A DNA stretch of 64,000 nt. It comes from Dimorphilus gyrociliatus. Its lineage: Eukaryota > Animalia > Annelida. Position numbers and translations under genes: made by a program. The DNA lies in the NCBI GenBank assembly GCA_904063045.1, contig CAJFCJ010000019.1:124001-188000 (forward strand), given 5' to 3'. Below the pieces are notes generated by a model. The model worked only from the letters and a program-made list of their open reading frames with translations. It ran no database searches and had not been told where the DNA came from. Positions 58,891 to 62,327 of the stretch are shown here, in pieces. Numbering within the stretch: position 1 is the stretch's first letter; each line of letters begins with the position of its first letter.

Positions 58891-59973
58891 ATGGAAATCG
58901 TTGCTGTTTTCGATTCGTCGTCACCCTTGAGCAAAAGCGTTGCTATAACTTTGCTAAAGAATAACTTTGTCGTTCGATGCCTAACGACAAACCGTGCTGA
59001 ATGCCAAATTTTGGAGCATCATGGAGCTGAATTATACAGTCAAGATCAGATAGACGATTGCTTGAAGGGTGTTCAAGCAGCTTATGTCTCGACGACCTCA
59101 AATTTCGATTCGATAACAAGCGTTCAAGATGAAATCGATCAAGGTCGAACTATAGCTGAAGCTTGTCAACGAGCCAGAGTCGAACACTTGATTTATTCCA
59201 CTCAATTGTCCGTTGCCCAGGTAACCGGAATGACCGTTAGACACATGGATGCTAAGTCGAGAGTGGAAGATCTACTTTTCAAAACTAGTATCCCATTAAC
59301 TAAAGTCATAATACCTCCCTTGTATGAGTATATTCTAGAACCAAGTATGATCCCTACTAGATTATCTGATAACCAGTTCGGATTAGGTAAGGTTTCCGCA
59401 TAGGAAATCCTGCTTTTCTAAACTATTAACAAGATATTCGCATGTTGAACAGAAATACCTATGAGTAATGTACCCTTAGACTTAATCTGTTTACAAGACG
59501 TGGGTTATGTCATTCTTGAAATGATTATACAGCGAAAAGCTTTAGTTAACAAAACCCTTAGTTTGTCTGCCACCAAACTGACAGTCCGTGATCTGGCATC
59601 GATCCTCACCCATAACCTAACAGACTACAAGTTCAAGGATAGTCAAGTAAGTTCTTTACGTTACTCGACAATCTCTTTTATTCTAATCTTAATGATCAAT
59701 CAGTTTTCTTAATCTACAATTGCGTTTCTCCTCCATTTTTTTGCACAGGTTACTGTTGAGCAGTATCAGGAGAGAAGACGTTTCAAAGGAGTCATCGATT
59801 GGAGCTATCAATTCGATTTTTACGTTCGAGTAGATCAGAAAGCATCTATTGAGCTGACCAAACATTTCTATCCTCATATAAAATCCTTCGGCCAATGGGT
59901 AGAAGAGAACAAAGCCGCCATCTATAATACTCTGAATAAACCTATGACACCAGCAATGGATCCTTTTCATTAG
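58891..59973 (+). CDS. NMRAL1: NmrA-like family protein, 3 exons (about 58891-59387, 59452-59646, 59749-59973)
   Basis: SVAITLL..FVVRCLT, GAE, LKGVQAAYVST, EIDQGRTIAEAC..VEHLIYST, HMDAKSRVE, VPLDLICLQDVG, SFGQWVEENK. The NmrA fold pattern is present but the Gly-rich motif is degenerate, so exact orthology is uncertain. Confidence 0.8.
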
Positions 59974-60118
59974 AAAAAAGCATATTAAATATTAATGAAA
60001 GAAATGGAAGAGAATTGTGTCGATTGAAAATAAAATAGGAGTTTTATCTTTTATTCATAATTAAATAAAAAATATGATAAGAAAAATGCAAAATATTTCA
60101 TATTAAAATTAAAATTAG

Positions 60119-61608
60119 TTAGAAAGACATCCTATCACGATTATGATCATTTCTCCCTTTAACGACTCGACCTTTTTCTGAATTATCAGTTTCTATGAAG
60201 CCCTAAAAATGATTGATTGGTAATCAATTAAAAAAAGGTCATTCGAATAAGTGGTAAAGCTTTTTTTTACCTTTACACCAGCACCAACACCATTTAAATC
60301 TAACAGGAAAGTGTCATGGCCATATAATGAATTTAGCTCGTAGTAAGAGACTCCTTGGTTTCCGGCGTCTGTTCAAGGCAGAAAAATATATATATATTTA
60401 TATTAGTCTATAAATCTTGTAGATATGAATGGTTTTTATAATAAAATGATAGGGCTTATTGATTGCATTTCAATACGGAAATTGATTACGAAATGACCAA
60501 CCTTGTAGACAATCTGCCAGCTCTTTTTGCTGCCAACATGGAAAAAGAATGTCAGTTTGAACACCAATAACCATAACTGGTATTTGAATTCTAGCCAACG
60601 CTTTTTTCATAGTTCCGAACGGTTCGGACAGATCAAACAAATCCATTGCTCTGGATATGTATAACAACGAATTTGGGTCTAATTTCGTTGAAAATAATTC
60701 CCCTTGATGATCCAAATAACTTTCAATTTGAAAGTACGGACACAGAGATGGTTTAGCGTTCTCGTCTATTTTTCTACGGTTAAACCTTTGATCCCACTCT
60801 GGTCCACTTCTATAGGTTAATGTTGCTATTTCTCTAGCTAATTTCGTTCCAAGCTTAGGATATTTGTCTGTGTTATAATAACGTCCCTGTTGCCAATTAG
60901 GGTCCGTAACAATGGCCTTCCGTTGCAAGTATCTATTAAGGAAACTGTTACACATTCTCATCATTCAAAATTAATAACAAGGAAACCTCATAGCGATCGA
61001 TGAAGGATGAGATCTCATACACGAAGATATCGAAACCAATCTACCAACGCGTTCTGGATGGAAAGCGGCTGAGGCTAACGACAGCATGCCTCCCAACGAA
61101 GATCCAACAGCAGCGTGCAACTATGAACATTTTATTTATTTACATTTTTTTTTTCACCCTCGTAATACCTTTTCTATTCCCAAATGATCAAGTAGTAAAA
61201 ACTGAGCGTTCACCATATCCTGAATGGTGATAATCGGAAAGGACGTTGCATAATGCTTTAGAAAAGGTTTCAGATTAATAAACAGATAATGTCAAGCAAA
61301 TTATCCTACATCATTCGTTATAGGGTTGATTGATGACGGACCTCTGTACAAAAAAAATAAAAAAACAGGAATAGTGTCAAATTTTGTGTTATAAATATTG
61401 TCAAGTTTATCGAATAATTACGTCGATCCATAGCAAGATCCTATATTATTGGTACAAATAATAAAATATTTATCAGTATCCAACGCGCGTCCTGGACCAA
61501 TGAACTTCTCCCACCAACCCGGCTCTTCGTTATCCTATTTGAGATATAAATGTATATTTTTATATATATTATTAATTATGAATTCTGTTTTCATTTGTTC
61601 CCTTTTCT

Positions 61609-61640
<32 letters not shown>

Positions 61641-62327
61641 TAAATTAAAGAAATAATTTACCGGGTGACTTCTGGCATGCGAACTGGCACTTAAGCCACC
61701 TTGCAATAGGACAGCATTATTCTTCTGTTCATTCAATTCACCGTATGTCTCATAAGCTACTGTAACCTATGTTCAAGATTGATTAGGCATAAGTATGTAT
61801 TTGACTTAGACATGGAAAAAAAAACAAGTATAATTGTTTACCTCTGGGAGAACTCCATCATTTTCACGAACATAAAAAGGTTTTGAGTACTTAAACGTCT
61901 TATAACCGGTTACGACACTTTGATAAGCAGGCTCTACATCGATATTTGTATTTCTAGATTAAAACGAATAAAGAAACATAAAGCATTAGAGTTAATCTAA
62001 AAGACTTCGAAGGACATATCATCGGAAATAAAAAGAAGGGAAAACATATTATATAGATCTATGTGCTCTCTGTAAATGCTAGTCTCAATAATGTCCATAA
62101 TATGATCAATATTTGAGAGAACCAAGATAAATCAAGAAAAGAATAGAATTTAATGTATATAAGAAGTATACTTACAATTGTGCAATGCAGGGAAATTGAG
62201 TTTGATCGATATTTGAAAATAGTTTCGACTGAAAAGCTTGTGGGCTGGGTTCAGCTGTTTGTGAAATAGTCCTTTTTTTCATCCAATTGGACGAAATTTG
62301 AACAAGTAATTTACATCTTCTATTCAT
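60119..62327 (-). CDS. MetX/Cys2-family alpha/beta-hydrolase acyltransferase, most likely serine O-succinyltransferase, mitochondrial, about 10 exons
   Basis: Basic presequence [22 protein letters not shown]; EPAY..GY; [13 protein letters not shown]; [15 protein letters not shown]; [32 protein letters not shown]; [10 protein letters not shown]; GSSLGGM (Ser); [18 protein letters not shown]; GVQTDILFP (Asp); YGHDTFLL (His). All introns are GT-AG. Confidence 0.92.

Follow-up and report, generated by a model that had tools for sequence, protein, structure and literature searches.

A gene of the annelid Dimorphilus gyrociliatus very probably encodes an orthologue of Cys2, the L-serine O-succinyltransferase of MetX group G3c; judging from the residues and relationships of the predicted protein, we put the probability of this assignment at ∼0.85. 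The gene lies on the minus strand at 62327..60119 of the window (the whole 64 000-nt stretch of DNA that was analyzed), where a three-frame reading of 62400-60050 connects 10 exons, separated by nine GT-AG introns, in one continuous reading frame. This frame runs from the ATG at 62327 to the stop codon at 60119-60121, exactly the ends given in a preliminary description of this DNA. We infer the preferences for substrate and acyl donor from the sequence, and the argument for a succinyl donor depends on a single Arg. The gene is made up of the following features, in the order of transcription.

62176..62327, minus strand: exon 1, with the start codon, a basic N-terminal extension (candidate mitochondrial presequence) and a conserved FPC motif at the exon end
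61842..61953, minus strand: exon 2, a eukaryote-specific N-terminal segment (14-residue stretch) that aligns to Owenia residues 86-115 and Acropora residues 75-106
61662..61766, minus strand: exon 3, with the start of the AYETYG core and the G-L-S-A turn (12-residue segment); MetX model positions 34-66
61422..61534, minus strand: exon 4, with two 11-residue conserved segments; MetX model positions 72-107 (E-value 2e-17); borders common to Owenia and Acropora
61310..61343, minus strand: exon 5, a 34-nt micro-exon (11 residues), 100% conserved in a related species; borders common to Owenia and Acropora
61169..61255, minus strand: exon 6; MetX model positions 121-148
60987..61120, minus strand: exon 7, with the nucleophile elbow G-S-S-L-G-G, with Leu right after the catalytic Ser; the exon ends in AG, the first two bases of the Arg codon split by intron 7
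60933..60986, minus strand: intron 7 as corrected, 54 nt
60502..60932, minus strand: exon 8 with corrected start, completing the Arg183-equivalent codon AG/A; lid domain with a 12-residue segment, and the catalytic Asp in QTDILFP
60271..60368, minus strand: exon 9, with the catalytic His and the adjoining Asp, YGHDTFL
60119..60202, minus strand: exon 10, the C-terminal tail and stop codon; aligns to the last Owenia exon, the preceding intron being shared
60050..60055, minus strand: candidate polyadenylation signal AATAAA, read from the sequence, 64 nt past the stop codon

In the initial model the introns measured 222, 75, 127, 78, 54, 48, 42, 133 and 68 nt, and intron 7 ended at 60945/60944 (exon start 60944). 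This acceptor was rejected, as it would insert four residues relative to the orthologues. The acceptor is the second AG, 12 nt downstream, at 60933/60932 (...ccttaatag/ATACTTG). Across the exon 7/8 junction the orthologues read SIA(L/M)-R-Y-L-Q-R-K, and the downstream acceptor restores SIAM-R-YLQRK, with the codon AG/A that is split over the corrected junction encoding the Arg. The shift makes intron 7 54 nt long, sets exon 8 at 60932-60502 and gives a protein of 449 residues rather than 453; after correction the introns span 48-222 nt. Both AGs of this tandem pair of acceptors, 12 nt apart, are present in the window (60932-60946, minus strand), whereas a related species has retained the downstream AG only, its upstream AG having mutated to AT. 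Use of the upstream acceptor could give a protein variant longer by four residues at the active-site lid, just before the Arg linked to succinyl specificity.

When the exons were scanned separately, exons 3, 4, 6, 7, 8 and 9 matched the NCBIfam MetX models NF001209 and TIGR01392 in collinear order, covering positions 34-66, 72-107, 121-148, 149-192, 195-336 and 340-366 of 381; exon 8 alone reached an E-value of 1.6e-45. A Pfam scan of the exons yielded the generic alpha/beta-hydrolase fold only. The catalytic triad is intact, with the Ser in GSSLGG (exon 7), the Asp in QTDILFP (exon 8) and the His in YGHDTFL (exon 9). All three columns are invariant across 69 relatives, and alignments to solved MetX-family structures agree. 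The intact Ser-Asp-His enzyme of the MetX family proposed in the preliminary description is therefore borne out, and both segments quoted there are present, the 12-residue one in exon 3 and the 14-residue one in exon 8. Among solved structures the best match to exon 8 was PDB 3vvl/3vvm (113.9 bits; E-value 4.9e-32 for 3vvl), which we take to be the serine O-acetyltransferase DcsE; other homoserine acetyltransferases scored at most 86 bits. Serine and homoserine enzymes are not told apart by the curated cut-offs of NCBIfam: PRK00175 is passed by every class, and the 500 bits of TIGR01392 are reached by none.

Class assignment was made at the level of individual residues. The marks of serine O-succinyltransferases are given in PMC9506716, which cites Bastard 2017 for them: G-L-S-A/P at X. 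campestris positions 52-55, a catalytic Ser followed by Leu or Met and not by Tyr (positions 149-150), Arg183 (F. aurantia numbering) and Asp360 (X. campestris numbering). The G3 Arg confers specificity for succinyl-CoA according to a later paper that follows Bastard 2017 (Chembiochem 2026, PMC13683966), and G2 enzymes have a different Arg, two residues past the catalytic Asp (PMC13683966). Columns were counted in an alignment of the 69 relatives (49 eukaryote, 8 bacterial GLSP-type and 12 HALTG-type rows) to which the exons had been added singly, each as its own fragment.

All four published marks are present in the window gene. Exon 3 carries the turn motif G-L-S-A, the residues of which occur in the eukaryote clade as G in 46, L in 44, S in 47 and A in 37 of the 49 rows, while the HALTG types read A-L-T-G in 12/12. 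The nucleophile in exon 7 is Ser-Leu, unlike the Ser-Tyr of G3b. At the column equivalent to Arg183 the window gene has R, as do 48/49 eukaryote rows and seven of the eight bacterial GLSP rows; all 12 HALTG rows have N, S, W or D. The fourth mark, the Asp directly after the catalytic His (GHD) in exon 9, is equivalent to X. campestris Asp360 and, being found in homoserine acetyltransferases (HATs) as well, does not discriminate between serine and homoserine enzymes. At the G2 Arg site, two residues after the catalytic Asp, the window gene has Leu. MetX-G1 enzymes are recognized by an H-A-L-T-G motif with a residue other than Arg at the G3 Arg site; here G-G-L-S-A and Arg are found instead.

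The relationships of the protein point the same way. An IQ-TREE phylogeny was built from the exon-8 region only (72 rows, 145 columns). In this tree, whose bootstrap was not fully settled, the window gene pairs with a related species (100/99) and the pair falls inside a bilaterian clade (96/96). The bilaterians lie within a eukaryote GLSA-type clade (99/94) that also holds cnidarians (including Acropora digitifera cys2), sponges, Trichoplax, Capsaspora and fungi; the HALTG types and the bacterial GLSP-type clade (100/97) are both separate from it. A. digitifera cys2 matches the functionally validated A. loripes Acys2 at each of its first 40 residues. Summed over exons, identity to the window gene is 69% for Owenia, 62% for Acropora, 47% for the bacterial GLSP type and 43-44% for the HALTG type; the best named match to exon 8 is likewise from the annelid Owenia (70.6%). 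The preliminary description had judged two segments of the protein closer to fungal Cys2 than to the bacterial HALTG-type homoserine transferases, and the four signature features, together with the grouping of exon 8 with the Acropora Cys2 orthologue, uphold that judgment. The phylogeny it had called for was obtained in part: the gene groups with coral cys2 and apart from HALTG types in a tree of exon 8, and the comparison with S. pombe Cys2 and with validated bacterial enzymes, including Xanthomonas SST, was by motif only, from the table of the published paper. The outgroup representatives carry only automatic metagenome names.

For the comparison of intron positions, the orthologues from Owenia fusiformis and Acropora digitifera were each mapped to the locus that encodes them, and the window exons were aligned to them one by one. 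Six of the nine positions (after exons 1, 3, 4, 5, 6 and 9) coincide with those of Owenia, the end of exon 1 aligning with the end of Owenia exon 1, and at least four (after exons 3, 4, 5 and 6) coincide with those of Acropora. The intron after exon 8 lies ∼3 codons from an Owenia intron (residue 419 versus 422) and ∼1 codon from an Acropora intron. Neither species has the introns that follow exons 2 and 7, and several ancestral introns within exons 7 and 8 have been lost in the window gene. The gene thus shows intron turnover, with two lineage-specific introns, one of which splits the codon of the succinyl-specificity Arg. The gene was probably already present in the cnidarian-bilaterian ancestor, for which the shared intron positions are independent evidence.

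A word search with exon 8 revealed a fragment with 90% identity (P0001) on three short Logan contigs (SRR23372228, SRR23372229 and SRR23372231). These contigs are genomic, come from the related species mentioned above and hold exons 4-10 in unchanged order, the introns being placed as in the window gene. Over 978 coding bases the nucleotide identity between the two species is 81%, with dN/dS of 0.026 and dS of ∼2 (near saturation); such a dN/dS value indicates strong purifying selection. The species could also serve as a comparison for other genes of the Dimorphilus gyrociliatus genome.

Since the MetX family is mostly microbial, contamination from bacteria or fungi, or horizontal transfer in the recent past, had to be considered as the source of the gene. 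Its nine spliceosomal introns, of which six coincide in position with Owenia introns and four or more with Acropora introns, refute this, and we give it next to no credence. The gene nests within the bilaterian clade. Its neighbor is an NmrA-like gene that also has introns, and the contig that holds both is AT-rich and even in composition (G+C of ∼32% across the whole window). The shared introns, the bilaterian placement and the selection seen in the related species together indicate an inherited gene under selection, and the earlier view that this is a genuine nuclear gene with about nine spliceosomal introns has held up. It is also very improbable that the enzyme is a homoserine O-acyltransferase (Met2, or MetX-G1, G2 or G3b) acting in methionine synthesis. 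The best-matching generic NCBIfam models are named homoserine O-acetyltransferase, as are many database entries; however, validated serine enzymes and the orthologues match the same generic models. Moreover, the window gene has GLSA and not HALTG, Ser-Leu and not the Ser-Tyr of G3b, and Leu and not Arg at the G2 site, and the exon-8 tree sets it apart from the HALTG types.

A further question is the acyl donor. The same orthologue could use acetyl-CoA, as a MetX-family serine O-acetyltransferase feeding an O-acetylserine sulfhydrylase. The match to 3vvl/3vvm, the presumed DcsE structure, favors such a role. So do database names: NCBI names within the clade vary (serine O-acetyl-, O-succinyl- and efuC-like), and several orthologues appear in NCBI or UniProt as ‘serine O-acetyltransferase-like’ or ‘probable serine-O-acetyltransferase cys2’. 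Against it stand the Arg of the window gene and of 48/49 clade rows, which the literature drawing on Bastard 2017 links to succinyl-CoA, and the measured activity of S. pombe Cys2, which is that of a succinyltransferase (PMC9506716). We consider an acetyl donor unlikely and prefer the serine O-succinyltransferase reading.

As a serine O-succinyltransferase, the enzyme would be expected from family knowledge to work by a ping-pong reaction. Succinyl-CoA would acylate the catalytic Ser of GSSLGG, the Arg encoded across intron 7 would hold the succinyl carboxylate, and the narrow G-L-S-A turn would select serine over homoserine. The acyl group would then pass to L-serine to give O-succinyl-L-serine, which a Cys1a-type PLP enzyme would turn, with sulfide, into cysteine, probably in mitochondria.

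The coral enzymes are among the closest known systems. An S. pombe cys2 deletion is complemented by A. loripes Cys2, and the coral evidence consists of complementation only (Salazar et al. 2022, PMC9506716). With A. loripes Acys2 and A. digitifera cys2 (P0352) the window gene shares the 99/94 clade, the 62% exon-summed identity, the four signature features, the intron positions (at least four identical) and an N-terminal extension that is similarly basic and poor in acidic residues. It differs from Acropora Cys2 in the loss of several ancestral introns in exons 7 and 8 and in having Gly before the G-L-S-A turn, versus Thr, Ala or Ser, and from both Acropora and Owenia in the two additional introns (between exons 2 and 3 and between exons 7 and 8). 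Its likeness to S. pombe Cys2 (Q10341, MetX-G3c) is a motif-level match over 31 listed residues, the motifs being taken from the table of the paper only; the fungal protein, of 504 aa, is the longer of the two and has an insertion following the lid.

The bacterial MetX-G3a SSTs (Xanthomonas, Frateuria, Halomonas and Stenotrophomonas) resemble the window gene in reaction class, in the Arg and in the Asp after the His, with a catalytic Ser followed by Leu or Met. They differ from it in having GLSP instead of GLSA and no N-terminal extension, and they form a separate clade (47% identity for the representative P0175). The MetX-G1 homoserine O-acetyltransferases (Met2; 6pux, 7ryt, 5w8p and 2b61) share the fold, the Ser-Asp-His triad and the ping-pong chemistry, but read HALTG where the window gene has GLSA, Asn or Ser where it has the Arg, and GHD-A/G where it has GHD-T, at 43-44% identity. 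In a scan for anchors of validated bacterial SSTs only uncultured gammaproteobacterial MAGs matched. Among 80 gammaproteobacterial MAG loci with a GLSP-type, SST-like MetX gene, none had a long ORF bearing a CysK-like PLP-lysine motif within ∼4 kb, which indicates that the two pathway genes are not adjacent in these bacteria.

The N-terminal extension of the predicted protein comprises ∼90 residues, the AYETYG core starting near residue 92; in bacterial relatives this core starts at residues 33-69 and in eukaryote orthologues at 91-199. Among the first 25 residues six are basic (Arg or Lys) and none is acidic (Asp or Glu), the first acidic residue being at position 26, and most orthologues have an N-terminus of like composition, basic and acidic-poor. 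By its residue composition, the N-terminus looks like a mitochondrial presequence. The fungal Cys1a is predicted to be mitochondrial (2026 preprint). No CysK-like PLP-lysine motif, as expected of a Cys1a-type partner, was found within the 64-kb window.

A mitochondrial location, independence from transsulfuration and consumption of sulfide, all put forward in the preliminary description, may be envisaged for the enzyme and its route. More speculatively, and with considerable doubt on our part, the Cys2/Cys1a route might act as a mitochondrial sulfide sink that fixes sulfide or reactive sulfur species onto serine, beyond a back-up supply of cysteine, in this miniature annelid of sulfide-prone marine biofilms and sediments.

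Because the exon-8 word search sees only fragments of 81-257 aa, a representative search and a word search with a full-length mollusc relative (P0121) were added, and the distribution of orthologues was taken from the latter. Among lophotrochozoans and their relatives, orthologues were found in molluscs, annelids (Owenia and Ridgeia), a brachiopod, nemerteans, a bryozoan and rotifers; among ecdysozoans, in a tardigrade and a priapulid; among deuterostomes, in echinoderms, hemichordates, amphioxus and tunicates; and outside the bilaterians, in cnidarians, sponges and Trichoplax. Many of them are already named ‘serine O-succinyltransferase(-like)’ by NCBI. The statement in the preliminary description that the pathway had been reported in corals and other invertebrates is correct: Salazar et al. 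2022 (PMC9506716) reported it throughout the animal phyla, with vertebrates, arthropods and nematodes as the exceptions. The sequence table of that paper has no annelid row, a gap that the window gene and the Owenia and Ridgeia orthologues fill. The window gene is an ordinary further example of an enzyme route described in 2022, and it leaves current knowledge of the pathway unchanged. Its value is as a clean annelid example of a pathway to cysteine from serine without transsulfuration, which most textbooks still omit for animals.

A few side observations concern the gene and its surroundings. Only two metatranscriptomes contained sampled words of the stretch, at 5-7% of them. Intron 3 contains a (CT)n/(GA)n dinucleotide run of ∼30 nt (window 61594-61640). 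The neighboring gene, at window 58891-59973 on the plus strand, is convergent and has at least three exons, the first of which matches the Pfam NmrA-like family (E-value 1e-15). Its stop lies ∼145 nt from the stop of the Cys2-type gene, a distance so short that the 3′ UTRs of the two genes must overlap or almost touch.
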